A DNA stretch of 64,000 nucleotides from Octopus bimaculoides. Its lineage: Eukaryota. Made by a program: the position numbers and the translations under genes. Below are positions 11,054-58,773 of the stretch, one piece after another. The DNA is taken from NCBI RefSeq assembly GCF_001194135.2, contig NC_068991.1, positions 72,030,065-72,094,064 on the forward strand, given 5' to 3'. How positions within the stretch are numbered: position 1 is the first letter of the stretch; the number at the start of each line of letters is the position of its first letter. The notes under the pieces were generated by a model. It worked only from the letters and a program-made list of their open reading frames with translations, was not told where the DNA came from and did not search any database.

Positions 11054-11170
<117 letters not shown>

Positions 11171-14143: not shown

Positions 14144-14412
14144 CTGCTTTGAAAGTCAGCTCATCTGGAGCTGTTGCACTATAATCATACAGAGCGCGCA
14201 CTGGCACACCTGGTCGGTTATCATCCACCAATGTTGTGTCATCAAGCCAATCATCACTGTCGGGGTCACCAAACGGATTCCTACTATCAGCATCTTTGAT
14301 ATCAGTAGTAGTAGTAGTAGTAGGAGCAGTAATAGAAGAGTAAGGAGGAGGAGCAACATATGTTGAGCTGGAGTATATCGAATCAGGGTTATGATTGTCA
14401 GCAGTTTCAGCA
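14144..14412 (-). CDS. PACSIN: PACSIN exon, distal linker with NPF plus N-terminal half of SH3: AETADNHNPDSIY...SRNPFGDPDSDDWLDD...GVPVRALYDYSATAPDELTFKA(G)
   Basis: Acceptor ctttgcag (14413-14414) and donor CAG|GTGAG (14143). Phase 2 to 1, joins in frame to the 11160 exon. VRALYDY...DELxFKAG is the SH3 signature. Confidence 0.95.
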
Positions 14413-15169
14413 CTGCAAAGTTAACAGAAATAGTCGGTGGTGGAATTGTGGCAACAGGGAGACAAAAAAGAAGCAGGAGTGCAACAAGTTTTAAAAAATG
14501 GAAAGAAGAAGAAAAAAAAAGAAAATATTAATAAAGATTTAAAAAAAAAAAAAACCCTTAAATCTACAGAAAAACACAGGGATTTTCAAAGGAAAACATG
14601 CATATAAAGGATACATAGAAAAAGAAAAAAGGAAAATGGTTGACGAAATCACATGCAAAGCAACATGGAGAAATGACATTAAAATAAATGCAGAAAAAAA
14701 ATTGAAAATACAAACATATAAAGCACACTGATTCTAGTAATAAAACAATATATATACATATATATGTACACACACATGTATATATATATATATATATAGC
14801 TGTGCAATAGAAGGGGATTAGAAGTAATGGTGGTTTCCAGAACTTTCTCTTTTACATTTTTAAAACAATAATGAAGATTTAGACATTATTAACTGTTCAA
14901 ATTATTGAATTCCAATGTTTTTTTTTTTTTCCAGTTTCTAAAACATGAGAGGCGCAAAGCCACAAGTTTGAAGCAGAGAGAAGATTAACTGATTAAATTT
15001 ACACCAGGATTGGATGAAATGTGAAGTTTGACTTTAGTTGGACTTGGATTGAGAATGTAAAGAGCTGTAACTAAATACCACAAGGCATTTTGGACAACAT
15101 TCTAACAACTCTGTCAACCCATTTCAATGATGATGATGATTATGATGATGACAATAATAATAATGATAA

Positions 15170-15560
15170 TCCTTTCTATTATAGGCATAGGGCCTGAAAT
15201 TTGGGGGAAGAGGGCTAGTCAATTAAATTGACCCCAGTGCTTCACTGGTACTTAATTTATTGACCCTGAAAGGATGAAAGGCAAAATTGACCCAATGAGA
15301 TTTGAACTCAGAATGTAAAGAGCCAGGAGAAGTACTGCTTGGCACAATGATGATGATGATGATGATTTCAAATTTTGGCAGAAGTACATCAAGTTTAGGA
15401 GAGGGGACAAGTCAATTACTTGCCTGGAACTTTGTTTTACTGACCCTGAAAGAATGAAGGGGCAAAGTTAAACTCAGTAGGATTTGATCTCAAACTGGAA
15501 AGGCTTGGAACAAAATACTGCAAAACATTTTGCTCAATGCTATACCAATTCTGTCAAACC
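15170..15560 (-). mobile_element. Two tandem SINE family A copies separated by a (GAT)n tract
   Basis: Both contain gaccctgaaag(g/a)atgaa...ggcaaa and the B-box in reverse. Confidence 0.75.
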
Positions 15561-16225: not shown

Positions 16226-16418
16226 TTAACTTTTTGCATTTAAATCCAGCCACATCAGGCCAAAATAGTCACCCTGTTTTATGTTCAAACTGGCCAAATC
16301 TGGCCTCTCACACCTATCCTACAACGTCATTTTAAAACATAAACAATCACATCCTCAATATCTTGAAGCTAGGAGCTACAATACATTTCACAAACTAATC
16401 TGAATGTTTAGGGGTTAA
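16226..16418. mobile_element. piggyBac-like MITE family F
   Basis: TTAA ends with degenerate TIR (ttaactttttgcattt / aatgtttaggggttaa); same internal sequence as the 19269, 36111 and 42098 copies. Confidence 0.7.
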
Positions 16419-17310: not shown

Positions 17311-19268
17311 ATAAGTTAGTCCTAGAGCGCACAATGTTCCTAAAAGTCAGCAATGGTCTTCCTTGGATATGAGTGGACGGCCATCATGTTGAAATGTAGA
17401 TAAAATAGGAAGGATTTGCGAGAGTCAAAAGCAAATGTAGTTCCAACAAGGAATCTGAAAAAGATGTCGGATTCAGTATATCACAGTACCAAACTTCAGT
17501 AATTTCTTTTGATTAGACACAAACTCAATTCATATGGCAAATGTTATAGGAAACTGAACTGATTCTGGTTTGGTATGGTGGACTCTCATACTGATGAAGA
17601 TTTTGCAACTTTGTGCTGAACAACCTAGACAGATGATTTGTTTTGTAGTGATCAACTGTACGTGGCATACATTAGCTCACTCCCTTCATAAAATTGCCAT
17701 TATCTGTACCACATGTCAGATATCAGTGATCATTGAGCAATGTGAAATGAAGTGTTCTGCTCAAGAGCACAAAGCACCACCTAGTCCCGGAATCAGAATC
17801 ACCATCTTGTGAACACGAGTGCAACAACCTAACCACTAGGCCATGTGCCTTAATAAATGAATATATTTATGTTCACTTTGTAGCCACATGGTTTCAATTT
17901 CATTGTAGGACACCCAGGGCAAGTGTCTTGAAATATAGCTTTGAGCCAACCAATGCCTTGTGAATTGCTAGACATAAACAGTATGGAAACTAGTTTATCT
18001 AAGTACGTATACGTGTGTGCGTGTGCGCAAATGCTGGTGTTTCTTGGCTTCACTAGTCACTGTCTGAATGAAACGGAAATGTAATGTTTACATTTCCCAT
18101 TGACAATACATCCTGTTACTCAGTGTTTTCAAAGACCAGCAGAATAATAATAAAAAAAAAAACAAGCAAACCCAAAAAACACCCTTACTTGAAAGACAAG
18201 TAATGGCTGGTGACAGGGAATGTGTCTAACTGTAATCTACTGTCTTGAATAAACTTCTGTCCAACCCATGCTAGCATGGAGAAAACAGACATAAAAATGA
18301 TCAAATGAGTGTGTGTTTGGTGTAATAGGTCCTTATCTCATTCAATGTTAGACTAATGATTGTAAGAAAAATCCACAAGATACAAGTAATACAACAGTTT
18401 CATTCCATCTGTTGTATGTGTTATATTTACAAGTCAGGTAGAAAAAAAAAATGATTGAATGCTATTAAGAGAAACCAGAAAAATTCCCCTTCCCTGCAAA
18501 ACACAATTTTTTTTCAAAATTCAAATAAGCAGAATTTGTTTAAATTCAAAATCATATCAAATATGTGTTATCAATGATATAGCAAAACATACATGAAAAT
18601 AACCTAAGCCTTAGACCTAAATGAAAAATATTTGCAAGCTTGTTATAAAATACAACAGTAGGCTTTTCAGACAGCTGACAATACAAAGAAGAATTACAAA
18701 GACGAAAAGAAAGGAAGAAAATAAGGAAGATCTAAAGAATCAAAGAGAAACAAAAAAAGTGTTGCATGCAGTTTCAAAAACGAGCTAACAGCAACATGCA
18801 CTGGCTGCAACTGTCATGACATCAGATTGAGGAAAGATAGATTCAAGTTAGACAAACAGATGACAAAAGGAAAAGAAAAATGAAATCAATCGGAGACAAA
18901 TTAATGGTTAAAATTTGGACAGAAAGCAGCTATATAAAATCTTTGGGAATAACAAAAAGGAACCTGCTCTTCATAGCCATTCCTATGCAGATATTTTAGG
19001 TTAATTATTATAAAATGAATTAAGAACTCTTCTAGCCAGAAAATTATTCTTTTCAGTGAAATTTGGAAAAAAAAAAACATAATAGATAATGATAAACATT
19101 GATATTAACCAACTTATCTAAAGAAAGGAAACAGTCCAAATAATCATTTAATATTTTTAAGCAAAGATACTACACTGAATATAAAGTTTATACATAGGAC
19201 AGATAGAATACAAACTGATGAAGAATAAATATAGAGACAGGTGTTTGCCTCCTTCTTTTTGCATTTTC

Positions 19269-19450
19269 TTAACTTTTTGGCATTTAAACGGGCCATATCA
19301 GGTTAAAATATTCTGTCCATTTCAGGTTGAAACTGGCCAGATCTAACTTCTCTCACCTGCCTGACAATGTCATTCTAAACTAAACAATCACATTATTGAA
19401 ACGTCGAAGAGCATAAAGATTTGAAACTAGTCTGAATGTTAAAGGGTTAA
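19269..19450. mobile_element. piggyBac-like MITE family F
   Basis: ttaactttttggcattt ... aatgttaaagggttaa. Confidence 0.75.
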
Positions 19451-19609: not shown

Positions 19610-19646
19610 CTGGGTTTATAGAAAATGTAAGCAAAAGTCACATAAC
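19610..19646 (-). other. Candidate 37-nt phase 1-2 exon (GYVTFAYIFYKP) or recursive (AG|GT) splice site
   Basis: Consensus donor CAG|GTAAGG at 19610|19609, preceded by pyrimidine-rich cttttgcttacattttctataaacccag; upstream AG at 19647-19648. Confidence 0.35.
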
Positions 19647-19906: not shown

Positions 19907-19963
<57 letters not shown>

Positions 19964-20002
19964 TGCATATGCTCTTAAATTAATTAGCTACAACCAGATT
20001 TG

Positions 20003-20043
<41 letters not shown>
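19907..20043. repeat. Two (AT)n microsatellites
   Basis: Direct observation. Other AT/AC tracts at about 10250-10500, 33110-33157, 44146-44235, 44740-44790, 52096-52120 and 60740-60790. Confidence 0.9.
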
Positions 20044-20053
<10 letters not shown>

Positions 20054-20315
20054 CTTTCCCCACCTCCCAGCACAAATTCATAAATAACAGTCAGAAGCAA
20101 ATCCATTAGAGAAAGTACAATGGAAATAAGGACACGTGGTAATCCTGTTGTGATTGTAGGTAAAAAGCAGGGGGGGCGAGTCTTGGTTTGTACTGATGTC
20201 GTTTGTTTGCAAGGTCAGATCTGGAGCGGTGCAAATGGACAGCTGATACAGGTTTACAACAACGGGAAGTTAACTAACTGCCTGGGGGTGTAGGATAGTA
20301 CCTACCTGGTAGAGA

Positions 20316-21132
20316 TCAATCAGAGAAATCAGATAAGGACTCAGTTTCAACACTGCGATAATAACCCTCAATCGACTGATCTGTGTTGGATCTGTTCAAA
20401 ACTCCATAGTCAGTCGATCCTTTTCGGCTACCTGTATATGGAGAAGGTTGATTCATAGGGCTCCTATTATTGTTCAGGTTCTTATTTGGAGTGCCTATAT
20501 TTCTGTTGCCACCAATTCCTTTGTTACCTCCAGCAGGCTTCCCAAGTATCATATCTCGAATTTCTTGGTCAAAGTTATCAGGTATTCCTCTATACTGGTT
20601 CTTTCTGATTGGGACTGGCGATGGAGAGCTAGGTCTCCTCTCTTCTATGTGAATTGCAGGTGCGTTTTGATTCATCAGGGGTCTCATCATTGGGTTAAGT
20701 GGACCCTGAGGCTGTGGGGTCATGCTACCACGTCGATTTGCTGGACTTAATTTTGGCTCATTTATTACTGGTGGTCGTATACCAGGTGGACCCATACCAG
20801 GTGGACCCATACCAGGTGGGCCCATACCGGGTGGACCCATACCAGGTGGTCCCATTCCGGGTGGTCCCATTCCGGGTGGGCCCATGCCAGGTGGACCCAT
20901 GCCGGGTGGACCCATACCAGGTGGACCCATGCCAAGTGGTCTCATGCCAGCTGGACCCATGCCAGGTGGTCTCATGCCACGGGGACTTGAAAGGTGGGAA
21001 CGTGGATCCATTCCATATTTAGCTGGTCCAGCACCACATCCTTGAGGCCCTAAAGGTCCCATACCTGGAGGTGACTGAGTAGTTGGGTTGATTTTTATGC
21101 CAGTGTTCAAAGGTCCTTTCTGCCTGGGTGAG
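20316..21132 (-). CDS. PACSIN: Large Pro/Gly/Met-rich PACSIN exon (SPRQKGPLNTG...(GMGPP)n...ETESLSDFSD*) ending in TGA
   Basis: Long pyrimidine tract tccttctttgttccttcctctatttaccttaatag at 21133+. The phase-2 entry coincides with the reading frame of the 306-aa ORF (about 270 open codons); synonymous variation among the repeat units. Confidence 0.75.
20770..20979 (-). repeat. Coding 15-bp tandem repeat, 14 units (10 GMGPP plus 4 variant units)
   Basis: Plus-strand unit ggtggacccat(a/g/t)cc(a/g), repeated. Confidence 0.95.
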
Positions 21133-21683: not shown

Positions 21684-21791
21684 TTTTTCTTTTGAGATGC
21701 ATCTTTCACCAAGTGTTTAGCATCACTATGTATATCTTCGTCGTCAGATTCCTCTCCAAAAGGATTGAGACTTTCATCGTAGCTCTCATGC
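21684..21791 (-). CDS. PACSIN: PACSIN linker cassette exon with NPF: HESYDESLNPFGEESDDEDIHSDAKHLVKDASQKK
   Basis: Acceptor cttttatag, donor AA|GTAATG; 108 nt, symmetric phase 2-2; NPF followed by an acidic cluster, typical of PACSIN linkers. Confidence 0.85.
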
Positions 21792-24700
21792 CTATAAAAG
21801 GTACAGGAGCTATGAAACTGTTCAAATTCAATGAAGTTGAGAGCTAAAAGTGTTGTATTTTTTATTTTTGGAGGGAAGGGAATGTGGAGCCAAAGTAAAA
21901 CTGAACACACACACACACACATACACGTACACACGCCATTCCATGCATTTTAAGATAAATTATTAGATCTAAAAAAAAAAACAAGAATGTTTTTAAAAGT
22001 GGATGTTAGGTTTCTTTGAGAGGATATTTTTCTGATAGGTATGGGCAATAAATATGAGAGAATTAATAAAACAAAAACAACAAACGTGAAAAAGAAAAAG
22101 GCAAGAAAATAGCGCCTCGTGTGTTTGAAAAAAAGCTCACCAAAATTTCAATTTGTTTACAGAATCAATAGTTATTAAACAAATAAACAGATATTAGATT
22201 GCTTTTGCAAGAGGAAACACATAAACACGCAAAAAAATACAATAATAAAATTGGAAGAAAAAAAATAGAGATATCAATAAACAATATCAAATACATGTGT
22301 TGTTTATCAAATTCATACAAATAGAAACAGTTTAGTATGAGGTATTTGTTGGAACCTGAAATATATTTCGTATGAATGCTGAAAATAAAATGAAATTATT
22401 AAAGAAAAAAAAAAGGCGCAAGAAACTGCAAGTTCAATCAGGACGCTCAACTGATTAGACAAAATAACAATTTTCCCCTTAGATTAAACCATTATTCTCA
22501 TTTTTTTATCCTTCCTAATACACGAAAATTAGTTGTAAATCAACATTTGATCTAAAAACATCTTTGCACTAAAGTTAACTCCCATCCTATACACATACAT
22601 ACACACACAAAAGCAATGTTAGACTCCTCATTTAATGGCGACTGCAAATTGAAGAAAAACCCCCCAGAAAACTCATAAAATGAAGGGTTGGACAAAATCC
22701 TTAGCTGTTCCCACTTAATGGAAACAATCTTATTGCTACTGTAAATTAATATTAAACTAGATCAATCCCGTCTTGCAGATATCGATAAACTCACCATTTT
22801 CAATAACTCTCTTCTAAACCTTAGAGTACATTGTCTGTTTATACTGGTTTTTTGTTTTGTTATTTTTGTCCCTAAGCAGGAAAACTTATTTCCTACCTTT
22901 ATATTGGAAGTGGGAAGAGGGGTAAAATTTTGATTGAATATTACTTAAACTTTCTGATATCAAATCACCAGAGAAGCTCCCCTGGTTCTACAATACAAAC
23001 TTCATTGTTAAAAATTATCCAAAAAGCTTTCATTAACGTTAACTTTTGTTCCAAACACCAATAACAATCATTTCACTAAATTCCTTATTATTTTCAAAAT
23101 TAATTGAAACAAAGGCAGAATATAGCAAGAAAAGTGTTAATTTATAATTCTGAAAAACGGTCAGTATTTCTGCTTTGTTAGTTTATTATTAATTCAAGAG
23201 TTTTTGTCTTGCGAACAACTTGATGACCTCATTAGTGTCAGTGAAAAAGTACAGAGTACATTCTGTAAAGTGGTTGGTGTCAGGAAGGGCTTCTAACCAA
23301 AGAAGCAATTCCAAAACAGACATTAGACCTGTTGGATCATGCCAAAGCATCTAACCCATACCAGCATGGAATACAGATGCTAAATGATGATGAATGATTC
23401 TGTGTATAATCTAATTATTCCAGAAATCTTAATCTAACTGCTTACCTTAATCCTCCACCATCTTTCATTATGTGTGACAATATAAGGAAAAACATATCCA
23501 ACACTTACGCAACATTTTTTCTTTCTTTCCATATTTAATTTGCATTCACAAATCTGTTTCTAAACAATTATCATTGATCACAAATACATTATTTACAAAA
23601 GTCTCTATTCTAAGATGGATGGCCTTAATCAGCACAGGACATTCATACTTCAGGCCAAGTGCAAAAGGATCTTAAGATATTTTCCAAAAGAACATTGATT
23701 TATACTACAGAAATAAAGATCATTCCATGCCTACATTTCCAATTTGGCACAGATTAAGGAGATATTTTTAACAACCATTTTCCAATATATCCAATTGCTC
23801 ATTTAGATCTAGCTCTCAGGTCAACTATAAATATTTCACTTCAAAATTAAACTGCGTATTCTTGACCACTATCTTAGATTTTTCATATGATGCTACTATC
23901 AAGGCAGTATTGATCCACATTGATGGGTATAATTTATTTAAAGGCTGCAGGTAATAAAATAGATAAACAGCTTAGCTATAAATCGACTTGCTACTGGTCC
24001 TGTTATGGCAAAATGGAGTTATAAAGTGTGTGTGTGCACACACACACACAAAATGAACTTTACAAAATTTGAATTAAATCTTTAAATTATTAAAGGCAGA
24101 TACATTTTACTATTTGTAGATGGTGTAAAACATCAAATCGTTTTTGACAGACTGACATACTAAAAGATTTCATTATTAGTTTTTACCGTTTTATTCAATG
24201 TGTTATTTAACACTTTCGATATGTCCCCTAATTTATATGATACGCCCTTCCCATTTTATGTGATCTAAATTAGAACTTCCTGTCCAAACATCATATCAAT
24301 TTATTTTGCAAACACTAGCTTTGTACTGACCACATTATTTCACTAAATTTTTCATTATTTTCAAAATGAATTAAAGCAAAGGCAATGTTCCTCAACAGAA
24401 ATACTAATAACAAAGAGATAACCACATTAATTAGAATTTCTTTAATCAGTTGTCATTAAAATTTGAAGAAATCTGTTGAATAGCTATAAATTACTGGCAT
24501 TTCCCCCCTCATAGAATAGACATAATAGGAGAAAAATAAATTGAATAAATCAAACTAAAACTGTTTCAATATTTCAAAGTTGATATCAAATAACCTCAGA
24601 CATTCATTCAAATGATCTATTCTAAAGGAAGGGGCCTCTTAGACTCTAACATAAGGGTCCATCACAGACTGTGACACTAATGGAGACTTTACAAACTATC

Positions 24701-26789: not shown

Positions 26790-27154
26790 NNNNNNNNNNN
26801 NNNNNNNNNNNNNNNNNNNNNNNNNNNNNNNNNNNNNNNNNNNNNNNNNNNNNNNNNNNNNNNNNNNNNNNNNNNNNNNNNNNNNNNNNNNNNNNNNNNN
26901 NNNNNNNNNNNNNNNNNNNNNNNNNNNNNNNNNNNNNNNNNNNNNNNNNNNNNNNNNNNNNNNNNNNNNNNNNNNNNNNNNNNNNNNNNNNNNNNNNNNN
27001 NNNNNNNNNNNNNNNNNNNNNNNNNNNNNNNNNNNNNNNNNNNNNNNNNNNNNNNNNNNNNNNNNNNNNNNNNNNNNNNNNNNNNNNNNNNNNNNNNNNN
27101 NNNNNNNNNNNNNNNNNNNNNNNNNNNNNNNNNNNNNNNNNNNNNNNNNNNNNN
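26790..27154. other. Assembly gap (N run)
   Basis: N bases. Other gaps: 33158-33853, 47841-48135, 52121-52804, 56655-56991, 58529-58538. Confidence 1.
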
Positions 27155-30483: not shown

Positions 30484-30714
30484 ATTTTTTGTTTGGTTGC
30501 AACAGTGGCATTCTGTTCGATTGCGACAGGGGCATTCTGCTCAATTGCGACAGGGGCATTCTGCTCGATTGCGACAGGGGCATTCTGCTCGATTGCGACA
30601 GGGGCATTCTGCTCAATTGCAACAGTGGCATTCTGTTTCCCTTTGCTATCTGCCGGATCCACTTCTGACACCTCATCAAAAGGATTCCTTTTGTTCTCCT
30701 GTTGTGGCTCTTCC
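30484..30714 (-). CDS. PACSIN: PACSIN linker cassette exon with NPF and an 8-aa tandem repeat: EEPQQENKRNPFDEVSEVDPADSKGK(QNA[P/T]VAIE)x5 QNATVATKQK
   Basis: Acceptor tttttttag, donor AT|GTAAAA; 231 nt, phase 2-2, open frame with NPFDE. Confidence 0.8.
30499..30642 (-). repeat. Coding 24-bp tandem repeat, 6 units (QNAPVAIE)
   Basis: Plus-strand unit ggggcattctgctc(a/g)attgcgaca, near-identical copies. Confidence 0.95.
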
Positions 30715-33157: not shown

Positions 33158-33868
33158 NNNNNNNNNNNNNNNNNNNNNNNNNNNNNNNNNNNNNNNNNNN
33201 NNNNNNNNNNNNNNNNNNNNNNNNNNNNNNNNNNNNNNNNNNNNNNNNNNNNNNNNNNNNNNNNNNNNNNNNNNNNNNNNNNNNNNNNNNNNNNNNNNNN
33301 NNNNNNNNNNNNNNNNNNNNNNNNNNNNNNNNNNNNNNNNNNNNNNNNNNNNNNNNNNNNNNNNNNNNNNNNNNNNNNNNNNNNNNNNNNNNNNNNNNNN
33401 NNNNNNNNNNNNNNNNNNNNNNNNNNNNNNNNNNNNNNNNNNNNNNNNNNNNNNNNNNNNNNNNNNNNNNNNNNNNNNNNNNNNNNNNNNNNNNNNNNNN
33501 NNNNNNNNNNNNNNNNNNNNNNNNNNNNNNNNNNNNNNNNNNNNNNNNNNNNNNNNNNNNNNNNNNNNNNNNNNNNNNNNNNNNNNNNNNNNNNNNNNNN
33601 NNNNNNNNNNNNNNNNNNNNNNNNNNNNNNNNNNNNNNNNNNNNNNNNNNNNNNNNNNNNNNNNNNNNNNNNNNNNNNNNNNNNNNNNNNNNNNNNNNNN
33701 NNNNNNNNNNNNNNNNNNNNNNNNNNNNNNNNNNNNNNNNNNNNNNNNNNNNNNNNNNNNNNNNNNNNNNNNNNNNNNNNNNNNNNNNNNNNNNNNNNNN
33801 NNNNNNNNNNNNNNNNNNNNNNNNNNNNNNNNNNNNNNNNNNNNNNNNNNNNNCCACCTTAATAAGAA

Positions 33869-42097: not shown

Positions 42098-42325
42098 TTA
42101 ACCCTTTAGCATTTAAACTGGCCATATCTGGCCCAAATATTTTACCTGTTTCATGTTCAAACTGGCCAGATCTGGCTGTTCATACCTATCCTACAATGTC
42201 ATTCTAAAAAAATAATCAATCATATCACAAAAATCTCAAAACTAGGAGATAATACTTACTTATTCTCATTGTTTTAAATTAATTGTATTACAATTGAATG
42301 AGTAATCTGAATGCTAAAGGGCTGA
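42098..42325. mobile_element. piggyBac-like MITE family F
   Basis: ttaaccctttagcattt ... aatgctaaagggctga. Confidence 0.8.
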
Positions 42326-47840: not shown

Positions 47841-48269
47841 NNNNNNNNNNNNNNNNNNNNNNNNNNNNNNNNNNNNNNNNNNNNNNNNNNNNNNNNNNNN
47901 NNNNNNNNNNNNNNNNNNNNNNNNNNNNNNNNNNNNNNNNNNNNNNNNNNNNNNNNNNNNNNNNNNNNNNNNNNNNNNNNNNNNNNNNNNNNNNNNNNNN
48001 NNNNNNNNNNNNNNNNNNNNNNNNNNNNNNNNNNNNNNNNNNNNNNNNNNNNNNNNNNNNNNNNNNNNNNNNNNNNNNNNNNNNNNNNNNNNNNNNNNNN
48101 NNNNNNNNNNNNNNNNNNNNNNNNNNNNNNNNNNNATTGTAAATAATATATTAAAATTTTCATTTATAACTTAAATATTTATGTTTGTCCATTTGCAAAA
48201 GGTTAAAATAATAATTAGTGAAACTTTGTAAACTACTATCATGTATGATTCATTGCAACAAAATATTCT

Positions 48270-50868: not shown

Positions 50869-52805
50869 TATACTAGTAGCTAGTATTACGTAATTTAATG
50901 TATCCTTCACTTTTTTTTTAAGATGGTGAGACCATGTAAAAAATAGCACTTTCTTCTTTTCATTATTATTTCTCAGTAGTGAAAGATAAAAATTTAACAT
51001 TTTAAATATCTGTAATGTAGTAGATGAATTATTAGTTGTTAGTACACTTGGAGCAGCTGTTATATAAAAAGTATTAGGTGTCAACCAGGTATAAAAGAAC
51101 ACTAGCAAAACACTACAATGATGTGGAGGTGATTAATAATAAAAAGAAATCCATAAAATCAAAATCAAAACTGGACTTTCAATATTTTTCACAATTACAC
51201 TAGTACATGGTAGCATGTATTGAAGCTTGGTATGAAATACTAATAACAGAATGCTCCAGCATCAAGCAGAAAACAAACAAACCAATCAAGAGAGAAATCT
51301 AATTGATTATAAGTCACTTCAATTAATTGCTATGGACCCCAAAATTATTAAGATAATCTGTGTAATCTACACGGTAGTCATTAACAGTTAAGAAAATGAG
51401 CAGCAATAACCTCATAGCTACAATATGGACACATTTTCAAGAGGAATGAAATATTTTCTTAAATTTTGAAAAGTAACCAATAAAGAGAAGAAAGATTTCC
51501 ATGGGATATTAAATTACTTGATACACACACACACACTGTCCATGTTCCATCGGTTGGACAGTTTGGCAGCATTTTTCAGATCCAAACACAGCATCAAACC
51601 CCAATCTCTTCTTTGGCATGGTTTCTGTGGTTGGGTGTTCTTCCTAAAGCCAAATCAATTTTACAGCATGTGCTAGGTACGTTTACCATGGAGCCAGCAC
51701 TAGTAAAGTTGCCACATAGTTGGCAAGACTAAGATCCCCTTTGATTGAGTGGGGCAAGAGTAAAGAGAGAAGGTAACTATGGGATGAAGATATAAAGTGT
51801 GAGAATGAGGGAGCAGAGCAGAACGGATTTCTTGCTGCAGAGGAGCTACATAGCTACTTACATTATAAAGAAAGATAGATAGATAGATATGCTAGATTGA
51901 GGTTATTTTAAAGCAAATTTCAGAATAATAATGAATTATTTACCAATTGGGGGATTCAATACTGAGAGTAAAGTCAAATTTATTATAATCTATGTTGGTT
52001 GGTTCTTTAAATTTTGCTTGGTATCTTTTTCAACTGAATTAGTTTAATAAGCTACCAGGTGAAATAAAGTCCCAGAAGTCTCAAGCAACACAGACTATAT
52101 ATATATATATATATATATATNNNNNNNNNNNNNNNNNNNNNNNNNNNNNNNNNNNNNNNNNNNNNNNNNNNNNNNNNNNNNNNNNNNNNNNNNNNNNNNN
52201 NNNNNNNNNNNNNNNNNNNNNNNNNNNNNNNNNNNNNNNNNNNNNNNNNNNNNNNNNNNNNNNNNNNNNNNNNNNNNNNNNNNNNNNNNNNNNNNNNNNN
52301 NNNNNNNNNNNNNNNNNNNNNNNNNNNNNNNNNNNNNNNNNNNNNNNNNNNNNNNNNNNNNNNNNNNNNNNNNNNNNNNNNNNNNNNNNNNNNNNNNNNN
52401 NNNNNNNNNNNNNNNNNNNNNNNNNNNNNNNNNNNNNNNNNNNNNNNNNNNNNNNNNNNNNNNNNNNNNNNNNNNNNNNNNNNNNNNNNNNNNNNNNNNN
52501 NNNNNNNNNNNNNNNNNNNNNNNNNNNNNNNNNNNNNNNNNNNNNNNNNNNNNNNNNNNNNNNNNNNNNNNNNNNNNNNNNNNNNNNNNNNNNNNNNNNN
52601 NNNNNNNNNNNNNNNNNNNNNNNNNNNNNNNNNNNNNNNNNNNNNNNNNNNNNNNNNNNNNNNNNNNNNNNNNNNNNNNNNNNNNNNNNNNNNNNNNNNN
52701 NNNNNNNNNNNNNNNNNNNNNNNNNNNNNNNNNNNNNNNNNNNNNNNNNNNNNNNNNNNNNNNNNNNNNNNNNNNNNNNNNNNNNNNNNNNNNNNNNNNN
52801 NNNNN

Positions 52806-55900: not shown

Positions 55901-57201
55901 AATTATTATTATTATTATTATTCAAATAATTTCAAATTAAAACTTCAGTGAACCTATTAGCTCTTTCTGTGTGCATATGATCATTAATAAAATGTGCCGA
56001 CACAATCTAGTGTACACAGACAACAGAACGTCTACAAAGAAACACAAGATTTTTGAAATTGGGTTTAAAACTGAAAACAAAAAGATAGTACACATATAAA
56101 CCACCAGTAACTCAATAAAATTGTAACTGGAATATTTCTCAGTACACATGGAGTGAGTGATTTTATAAACATACCATAATTTCTGGCTTTAAGTCTATGG
56201 ACAGTGAGTGAAAAGCTTGGGGGCCGACTAATAAGATAAACTGACTTTGTGAATGTGCAGAGTAATTTCTAAATAATGTTGGAGTGGTAGGAGAGAACAT
56301 CAAGAGATGGTGTACAGAAAAGAGGAAAAAATAGGGCACCAAGATAAATTAAAATAACTTTATGAACAATGTGGGGTAGTTGTATATCCTACACCACACA
56401 CACCATACATATGAAACATTAACTTTATTATTTAATAACACTGCAGTATGTAATAAAGCAAAAAAGGGATAGGCTATTGAGGATAAAGGAAGCTTGAGAA
56501 AACAGAAGTGGTATTGGTGTATGATGAGAGTGAAAGGTGAGAATATATTTCAAATACTTGAGTAGGGATAAAAAAAGTGTTAAAAAAAAAGACATTTATT
56601 TCATAGGAAGAAGTTTTATTGTCCAAACTTGACTGACCCATAAAGTGGGGGGGGNNNNNNNNNNNNNNNNNNNNNNNNNNNNNNNNNNNNNNNNNNNNNN
56701 NNNNNNNNNNNNNNNNNNNNNNNNNNNNNNNNNNNNNNNNNNNNNNNNNNNNNNNNNNNNNNNNNNNNNNNNNNNNNNNNNNNNNNNNNNNNNNNNNNNN
56801 NNNNNNNNNNNNNNNNNNNNNNNNNNNNNNNNNNNNNNNNNNNNNNNNNNNNNNNNNNNNNNNNNNNNNNNNNNNNNNNNNNNNNNNNNNNNNNNNNNNN
56901 NNNNNNNNNNNNNNNNNNNNNNNNNNNNNNNNNNNNNNNNNNNNNNNNNNNNNNNNNNNNNNNNNNNNNNNNNNNNNNNNNNNNNNNNNNNGGGAGGGGG
57001 GGGGTGCCTTTTTAACTGAGAAAAAAAGACAAGATTAATAAGTGAGTCTTTCAAACATGCAACAAGAATGACTAGAGTACATAATATAAAAAAAAAGTCT
57101 GTCTTCTTGTGACTAAAAATAGTCTTTAATTTTGTATGAACAAAAAATGAGAATTAAAACTAGGACAGAACTTTATAATATAATAAAATTGTTGTTAATA
57201 A

Positions 57202-58040: not shown

Positions 58041-58773
58041 TCCAAACGCCAACCACTCAGATTACATGGGTCATAATTGTTCTCATAGCAACAATGCTCT
58101 TCTCAATAAGAATGAGTGAGATGACGATGAGGATTTTAAAATGGAATGAGTAGCATAAAAGGAGAGATGGAATCGTGAAATATTAGACCTCAATTGTTAA
58201 TTCTTAATAAACTTGTTATAATATACAATTATAAAATCAACGTTGGTTATAAAATCTGGGGCCAGCTAATCAAAGAAGATTCTTTCCAATGTCTTCTTAA
58301 TTTGGTTCTACTTTCTTTAGATACTGAGATTGCAAATGATGCCTTTTTTTTTGTTTTTGTTCTAATATGGATAATGTTTCTACCATGTGAAACATTATAC
58401 CGGAGGTTGTAAAATAAAATCCACCATTAACTCTCCAATGTTGTTAGATAATAACATTTTACTGGCCTTCTAAGAGAAAAATTAATTAAAAGATAATACA
58501 GGAAAAGTAAAACAAAAAAAAAAAAAAANNNNNNNNNNAAAAAAAAAAAAAAAAAAAAGATAAGCTTAATCCAAGATTATCAAGCCTCACTAATCCCTTC
58601 AGAATAAAAAATAAGCTAAATGAGAATAATACAAGCAAAATTCATAGATATTCATAAATAGGTACAGACATCAGATATCAACCCTATGATTTTGGGTTCA
58701 ACCCCCACCTGTGCTACTTTGGGGAAGTATGTGCCACTGTAGCACCAAACCAACTAATGTCTACTAAGTGAAT

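Follow-up and report, generated by a model that had tools for sequence, protein, structure and literature searches.

Why a long open frame should run into a stop codon only ten nucleotides before a consensus splice donor is the question raised by a stretch of 64,000 nucleotides (nt) of the Octopus bimaculoides genome (assembly GCF_001194135.2, contig NC_068991.1, forward-strand positions 72,030,065 to 72,094,064), hereafter the window, which contains a large exon built around Pro-Gly-Met (PGM) repeats. The reading is of the minus strand throughout, in window coordinates. An earlier note on this DNA had offered three answers, namely an alternative C-terminus lacking an SH3 domain, a poison exon triggering nonsense-mediated decay (NMD), or a switch gated by the stop codon. 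Our analysis favours the first, with a probability of roughly 0.6, the PGM exon being a conserved internal cassette exon of the octopus PACSIN/syndapin gene which brings its own stop and would lead to an SH3-less syndapin isoform, with the SH3 exons becoming 3' untranslated region (UTR). The elements at issue are the following (^ marks a splice junction):

20306..21132, minus strand: PGM-repeat exon, 827 nt, phase-2 acceptor, the split codon being followed by 271 sense codons, a TGA and a 10-nt tail
20316..20318, minus strand: TGA stop, 10 nt before the donor, with the A of the TGA at 20316
20300..20308, minus strand: PGM donor CAG^GTAGGT, exon end 20306, score 11.06 with a position weight matrix (PWM)

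The PGM exon starts at 21132 behind a strong polypyrimidine tract (...ccttaatag^CTCACCCAGG), its first base completing a codon, which makes the acceptor phase 2, and it ends as ...GAT TGA TCT CTA CCA G^GTAGGTAC, 20306 being its final base and 20305-20304 the GT. Both the stop 10 nt before a consensus donor and the placing of the A of the TGA, as given in the earlier note, were confirmed in the sequence, and the donor is in phase 1. The open frame through the exon runs for 275 codons, and the exon translation is 100% identical to UniProt A0A0L8IC45 (A0A0L8IC45_OCTBM), an 'uncharacterized protein'.

Judged from its sequence, the window contains the 3' part of the O. bimaculoides PACSIN/syndapin gene, since it holds SH3 exons of the PACSIN type with NPF linker exons upstream of them. 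PACSIN proteins consist of an F-BAR domain, an NPF linker and an SH3 domain (PMC9285741), and the linker and SH3 exons read here are:

30484..30714, minus strand: NPF1, putative linker cassette exon, 231 nt, phase 2/2, recognised from sequence and splice sites
21684..21791, minus strand: NPF2, linker cassette exon, 108 nt, phase 2/2, encoding HESYDESLNPFGEESDDEDIHSDAKHLVKDASQKK
14144..14412, minus strand: SH3a exon, 269 nt, phase-2 acceptor, phase-1 donor
11054..11160, minus strand: SH3b exon, second SH3 half and canonical TGA stop (11056-11054)

When the NPF+SH3 peptide was compared with the PDB the five best matches were all PACSIN1, PACSIN2 or PACSIN3 (E 1.3e-20 to 9e-19), with the next family, GRB2, five orders of magnitude weaker (E 8e-15), and the alignment to PACSIN2 spans the NPF linker motif. 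Pfam assigned SH3_1 to the same peptide (2.4e-14), and a tblastn search with a PACSIN1 query matched both SH3 exons. The three NPF motifs are distributed one each over NPF1, NPF2 and SH3a, the last of which also holds the first SH3 half (VPVRALYDY...TFKAG, within the peptide ...SRNPFGDPDSDDW...VPVRALYDYSATAPDELTFKAG). NPF1 encodes ...ENKRNPFDEV... followed by five near-perfect 24-nt repeats reading NAPVAIEQ, has a weak donor (AAAAAT^GTAAAA, score 1.7) and is likely to be a further alternative cassette exon; the donor of NPF2 (AAAAA^GTAATG) is also weak. No F-BAR exon was detected by tblastn in the 64 kb with the PACSIN1 query, an approximate sequence, and the F-BAR exons presumably lie beyond 64000, upstream of the window.

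The consequences of including or skipping the PGM exon follow from the splice phases. NPF1 and NPF2 are phase 2/2 and multiples of three in length, and the acceptors of the PGM and SH3a exons are both phase 2, that of SH3a because a TAA lies directly upstream of its only usable AG. With its phase-2 acceptor the PGM exon therefore fits the PACSIN linker donors. Joining NPF2 to SH3a, with the PGM exon skipped, gives one uninterrupted frame (...KKNAETADN...ALYDY...YVEPL-stop) to the canonical stop. The PGM exon, at 827 nt, leaves a remainder of 2 on division by three, and its inclusion thus puts the SH3 exons out of frame even with the TGA bypassed. This bears directly on the switch proposed in the earlier note, in which adenosine-to-inosine (A-to-I) editing (UGA to UGG) or readthrough at 20318-20316 would link the PGM tail to SH3: the phase-1 donor meets a phase-2 SH3a acceptor, and a simulated TGA-to-TGG change or readthrough yields ...SDFSDWSLPVLKLL...poly-Leu...QMS-stop, which is SH3a read in its +1 frame and contains no SH3 domain (TGA-to-TGG product ...SLSDFSDWSLPVLKLLTIITLIRYTPAQHMLLLLLTLLLLLLLLLLLLISK...QMS-stop). 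An unspliced extension past the TGA amounts to 14 codons.

Other routes around the stop fare no better. The in-exon donors at 20528 and 20432, put forward earlier as bypassing it, are indeed phase 1, but they lead into the same out-of-frame SH3a tail. Stronger phase-1 GTs occur at 21065 and within the repeat, at its GGT codons. Phase 1 is the only phase found among in-exon donors with scores above 0, the best phase-2 candidate reaching -0.45. A weak tandem GT 4 nt 3' of the PGM donor (TAG^GTACTA, exon end 20302, score 1.6) is in phase 2. Cryptic phase-1 acceptors in SH3a that would restore the frame (14293, 14209) are weak, and a crude scan of the intron for bridging exons returned one candidate of phase 1>2 (18270..18189), no more than for other phase pairs. 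Nor did we find signs of a recoding element: a 301-nt fold around the stop showed no extra stability over shuffles (z = +0.66) and Rfam, with the selenocysteine insertion sequence (SECIS) included, gave no match over the whole window, so that a selenocysteine or structured recoding element is unsupported. The context of the stop is G-UGA-UCU, which bears out two caveats already attached to the switch, a 5' G neighbour and a departure from UGA-CUA, and we know of no readthrough context of the UGA-U type. As a separate observation, no stop interrupts the +1 frame of SH3a over 123 codons (14159-14527, minus strand), the frame into which any PGM-exon transcript with a bypassed stop would run. It includes a 20-residue poly-Leu, which arises from an (ACT)6 run reading TTTTTT in the real frame. 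The open frame is probably coincidental.

Splice sites were scored with a simple PWM based on generic metazoan matrices, not trained on cephalopods. On this scale a score of at least 11 is reached by seven of 3515 GT sites, counted over 61.6 kb of the minus strand, and both the PGM donor and the SH3a donor are among the seven; the PGM donor is therefore more than a chance occurrence.

In order to compare the exon across cephalopods, related open reading frames (ORFs) were gathered by protein search, which gave two, and by clustering, which added a third, all on short Logan contigs. L001 and L003, from sister runs, represent two animals of a second octopod whose exon is 92% identical at the nucleotide level, whilst L002, at 40-56% amino-acid identity, belongs to a far more remote cephalopod. 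The contigs look genomic, because all three carry intron sequence upstream of the same acceptor (tag^CTCA). All retain the frame and repeats of the PGM type, as well as an NPMMR motif, the block RGIP(D/E)NFD(Q/K)EIRD(M/L)ILGKPAGGN and the C-terminal end YYRSV(E/D)TESLSDFSD followed by TGA, whose position and GAT TGA TC surroundings are unchanged in L001/L003 and in L002. That the TGA might be an assembly error, named in the earlier note as a refuting case, can be set aside since three independent Logan contigs have it at the identical position, and the check suggested there, conservation of the stop in other octopods, turned out positively: the TGA and the downstream GT are kept in the second octopod and in the distant cephalopod.

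The few nucleotides after the stop behave differently. In the octopods they read TCTC(T/C)ACCAG^GTAGGT, with 10 nt before the junction and a donor identical in L001, and in L002 they read TCAACACAAAG^GT, with 11 nt and AAG^GT at the junction. As both length and sequence of this tail differ between lineages it appears to be untranslated, and the presence of AG^GT at a like distance in distant lineages argues that the donor may well be functional. The exon measures 827 nt in the window, 791 nt in L001 (also 2 modulo 3) and, if AAG^GT is the donor, 1164 nt (0 modulo 3) in L002. In L002 the exon region (189-1354) contains longer repeat units, of the PPGMGPRGAGVG type, and its acceptor is immediately preceded by an in-frame TAA.

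Outside the repeat, the exons of the two octopods differ by 14 synonymous and 12 non-synonymous changes, corresponding to a ratio of non-synonymous to synonymous divergence (dN/dS) of 0.23 at a synonymous divergence (dS) of 0.15, roughly the same as the 16% by which the upstream intron has diverged. In the blocks that can be aligned with L002, 15 codons carry synonymous changes only, against 4 replacements, all conservative. The low dN/dS, a dS close to intron divergence and the dominance of synonymous changes in conserved blocks point to selection at the protein level, and constraint on amino acids rather than on nucleotides is, as far as sequence comparison can tell, the signature of a translated, functional peptide and not of a stretch preserved just for a stop codon or for signals in the RNA. 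Conservation also extends into the intron, where about 110 nt 3' of the donor (20195..20305, minus strand) are 94% identical between the octopods, as against 84% in the upstream intron, their alignment containing one 6-nt and one 2-nt indel. A brief look at 20195-20305 found no obvious known splicing-factor motifs; the segment probably serves to regulate splicing or, should the donor go unused, belongs to the 3' UTR. L001 and L003 themselves differ at columns 68-70, 382, 464 and 1000 (poly-C length, C/T, A/G giving Ser/Gly in ...NT(S/G)IK..., and A/C), which fits polymorphism between individuals; the A/G difference could be an editing site if the runs were RNA.

Within the encoded tail three segments stand out:

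20779..20969, minus strand: 15-nt tandem repeat, 12.7 copies, encoding MRPPG/MGPAG/MRPLG and ten MGPPG units
20523..20591, minus strand: conserved block RGIPDNFDQEIRDMILGKPAGGN, 20 of 23 residues identical in L002, with 9 synonymous-only codons and 3 replacements
20319..20363, minus strand: conserved C-terminal peptide YYRSVETESLSDFSD, 14 of 15 residues identical in L002, with 6 synonymous-only codons

The tail is rich in P (20%), G (18%) and M (8%), with 11 PPGM, 15 GM dipeptides and about 13 pentapeptide units of the PPGM/GMRPP kind, and the copies of the 15-nt repeat vary mainly at synonymous third positions whilst encoding identical MGPPG units. Its conserved motifs are the RGIPDNFDQEIRDMILGKPAGG block and the acidic, serine-rich C-terminal end given above; the sequence contains GIPDNFDQEIR and, at the C-terminus, SVETESLSDFSD. 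No PxxP core is present within the repeat and, given its PPGM units, the tail is thus closer to the PGM-type motifs of SmB/N than to a ligand of the classical SH3 kind. Neither Pfam nor the PDB yielded a family or chain related to it; among 1.84 billion representatives its only relatives were two cephalopod ORFs, and exact look-ups of P0001, of the window ORF and of the +1-frame SH3a ORF gave no match. We take the 271 residues to be disordered and a candidate multivalent proline-rich ligand of the PGM type; WW, GYF or OCRE domains as its partners are a matter of speculation.

Taken together, these observations suggest the following model. Where the PGM exon is skipped, the linker would join the SH3 exons in frame to give a canonical F-BAR/NPF/SH3 syndapin. 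Where it is included, translation would pass through the 271-residue disordered tail and end at the exon's own TGA, and the strong donor 10 nt further on would splice the exon to downstream exons serving only as 3' UTR. The predicted product is a syndapin with F-BAR domain and NPF linker, without SH3 and with a PGM-type tail, which would have lost its coupling to dynamin and N-WASP as well as its autoinhibition, and which could modulate canonical syndapin via F-BAR dimerisation. The exon is flanked by a functional-looking acceptor and donor, both kept in L001, with the acceptor and AG^GT kept in L002, and the conserved frame, exact stop and C-terminal peptide together with coding-type substitutions support the SH3-less alternative C-terminus suggested in the earlier note. 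What the sequences show directly is the anatomy of the exon, the splice phases, the conserved frame, stop and donor, and selection on the protein; inclusion of the exon, a PACSIN linker exon as the upstream partner, use of the donor, 3'-end processing, translation in vivo and binding by the tail are the steps that we infer.

Several points weigh against this model. The only annotated model, A0A0L8IC45, is a separate two-exon gene starting at a mini-exon at 23468, and the linkage to a full PACSIN gene rests on strand, order and phase, with the F-BAR exons outside the window. The protein databases gave only exon-sized ORFs and the contigs are genomic-looking; the L002 donor cannot be scored, its contig stopping right at the GT; and 827 nt is unusually long for an internal exon. 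Finally, if the exon is spliced to SH3a, the first junction follows the stop after 10 nt and the SH3a/SH3b junction after 279 nt, and an mRNA with a junction 279 nt past its stop should be unstable if NMD dependent on the exon junction complex (EJC) operates in cephalopods.

The NMD problem would be sidestepped if the PGM exon were an alternative last exon, with the 20306 donor unused and polyadenylation taking place in the downstream intron, for example near the ATTAAA at 19152 or at a non-canonical site, so that the same protein would be made with another 3' UTR. The 2015 gene model does end at the PGM stop, and the 94% identity past the donor would suit a 3' UTR, although conserved intron flanks are typical of regulated cassette exons too. 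The sense strand offers little by way of signals: no A(A/T)TAAA occurs within 1.15 kb after the stop, the first AATAAA 3' of it is at 15261 (5 kb) and the lone ATTAAA, 1.15 kb off, is at background density (0.78/kb). The statement in the earlier note that 1.3 kb downstream lack an AATAAA is true, but about one would be expected there and the observation is uninformative alone. All introns are T-rich on the sense strand, and the 5.9-kb intron contains one sense-strand AATAAA as against 4.3 expected from composition, a depletion which we rejected as too weak an argument against intronic polyadenylation. Against a last exon there is also the near-consensus donor 10 nt past the stop, with AG^GT 11 nt past it in the distant cephalopod; polyadenylation close to a strong U1 site should be suppressed. 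We regard this alternative as unlikely.

A pure poison exon, whose inclusion would only make an NMD substrate that lowers syndapin output and whose tail would be functionless, is less probable still. The geometry anticipated for it in the earlier note does fit, with the stop 279 nt upstream of the last junction on splicing to SH3a/SH3b, and the flanking intron is conserved, so that NMD may act as a further layer of regulation. EJC-dependent NMD is, however, to our knowledge not established for molluscs, and a merely poisonous role does not fit the constraint at the amino-acid level, seen in a dN/dS of 0.23 with dS near intron divergence, in the 15 synonymous-only codons against 4 replacements and in the retained C-terminus, since a poison exon needs just a stop and not 271 codons of conserved frame.

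To much the same small degree we would credit a nested gene, in which a promoter in the PACSIN intron would drive a free-standing, PGM-rich protein of 279 amino acids (MKDGGGLS plus the exon) without F-BAR or SH3. It is represented by the annotated model A0A0L8IC45, whose start is:

23446..23468, minus strand: first mini-exon of A0A0L8IC45, 23 nt, ATGAAAGATGGTGGAGGATTAAG^GTAAGC, reading ATG AAA GAT GGT GGA GGA TTA AG

The mini-exon donor (AAG^GTAAGC, at 23446) is among the seven top-scoring donors on the strand. A 23-nt first exon made of an ATG and a donor is, on the other hand, typical of ab initio prediction, the phase-2 acceptor of the PGM exon matches every PACSIN linker donor, the model passes over NPF2 and the promoter is without independent support. 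The mini-exon is not itself a phase 2/2 PACSIN cassette, as it has no in-frame AGN codon, and is either an artefact of ab initio prediction or an indication of a promoter within the intron.

It is very improbable that the UGA acts as a conditional terminator, where editing or readthrough combined with the 20302 donor would give the octopus an F-BAR/PGM/SH3 syndapin on demand; equally far-fetched is the counterpart in the L002 lineage, in which, with an exon of 1164 nt, the stop alone would separate the PGM tail from the SH3 exons. Least credible is the stop-gated link to SH3 in its original form, for which one may cite the stop-loss editing events recognised as a class in coleoid editomes (PMC8382921), the 1164-nt exon of L002 if AAG^GT is its donor and the weak phase-2 tandem donor, yet against which stand the lengths of 827 and 791 nt (both 2 modulo 3) with a strong donor and an SH3a read in +1 to QMS-stop, in-exon donors above 0 that are all phase 1, no bridging exon beyond chance, a post-stop length of 10 versus 11 nt that is not kept modulo 3, the unremarkable fold, the lack of a SECIS or Rfam match and the unfavourable G-UGA-UCU context.

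Some further features of the window are recorded here. The upstream intron region contains six assembly gaps (N runs, 2388 nt in total), in which small exons could hide:

26790-27154, 33158-33853, 47841-48135, 52121-52805, 56655-56991 and 58529-58538: assembly gaps (N runs)

Copies of a dispersed repeat, 73-77% identical, are found at 19270-19450, 16226-16418 and 42098-42218, and a strong donor-like site at 19357 sits within one of them; another strong donor-like site lies at 19610 (CAG^GTAAGG). Two long (TA)n microsatellites lie at 19920-20045 (minus strand), about 260-390 nt 3' of the PGM exon, and TG/CA and TA microsatellites are common across the window.

The SH3 domain of vertebrate PACSIN recruits dynamin, N-WASP and synaptojanin. 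If our favoured reading is true, the SH3-less isoform could shape membranes in a constitutively open state or act as a dominant negative within F-BAR heterodimers, and its PPGM array and two conserved motifs may bring other binding partners. Coleoids are known for large, fast synapses, and an exon kept across coleoids with no detectable relatives elsewhere is a candidate for a lineage-specific adjustment of the endocytic machinery. For annotation, the orphan A0A0L8IC45 exon probably belongs to the PACSIN gene. More generally, even in an animal in which RNA editing is heavy, a stop codon placed directly ahead of a donor does not have to mean a recoding gate, and here a check of splice phase decides the matter. 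What we propose is an isoform switch of a familiar kind, unsurprising in mechanism and useful for annotation and for cephalopod synaptic cell biology.

How does the exon compare with known systems? Stop-containing cassette (poison) exons coupled to NMD are found, for example, in the genes of serine/arginine-rich (SR) proteins, where conservation is at the nucleotide level and nothing useful is encoded. The octopus exon is likewise internal, with both splice sites and an in-frame stop far before the last junction, but it is under codon-level purifying selection and has a conserved C-terminal peptide. Coleoid editome pipelines handle stop-loss A-to-I editing explicitly (PMC8382921), and the octopus UGA could in principle become UGG, yet it has no in-frame functional extension, no supporting RNA structure and an unfavourable 5' G. 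The PGM-type tail motifs of SmB/B'/SmN (GMRPPPPGMRG) are ligands of the FBP21 WW, CD2BP2 GYF and RBM5 OCRE domains (PMC5127646, citing Bedford et al., 1998); like the octopus tail, these are disordered C-terminal stretches with short repeats of Pro-Gly-Met(-Arg), whereas the octopus unit, PPGMG, has two prolines only, is mostly without flanking Arg and is a predicted ligand.

The closest comparisons are within the PACSIN family itself, although we found no literature pairing syndapin or PACSIN with cephalopods or octopus. The long and short splice forms of vertebrate PACSIN2/syndapin II arise from frame-preserving linker exons that alter the number of NPF motifs (PMC9285741), and octopus NPF1 and NPF2 (231 and 108 nt, phase 2/2) are alike in belonging to the same family and the same protein region; the PGM exon differs from the vertebrate linker exons in that it does not preserve the frame, carries its own stop and removes SH3. 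No natural SH3-less PACSIN isoform is described in that review, according to which the vertebrate SH3 domain binds dynamin and other ligands and autoinhibits F-BAR, and delta-SH3 constructs act as dominant negatives (PMC9285741). The predicted octopus isoform has the same domain content as these constructs, F-BAR and linker with no SH3, but where the latter are laboratory truncations the octopus loss would be natural, regulated by splicing and accompanied by the gain of a conserved tail of 271 residues.

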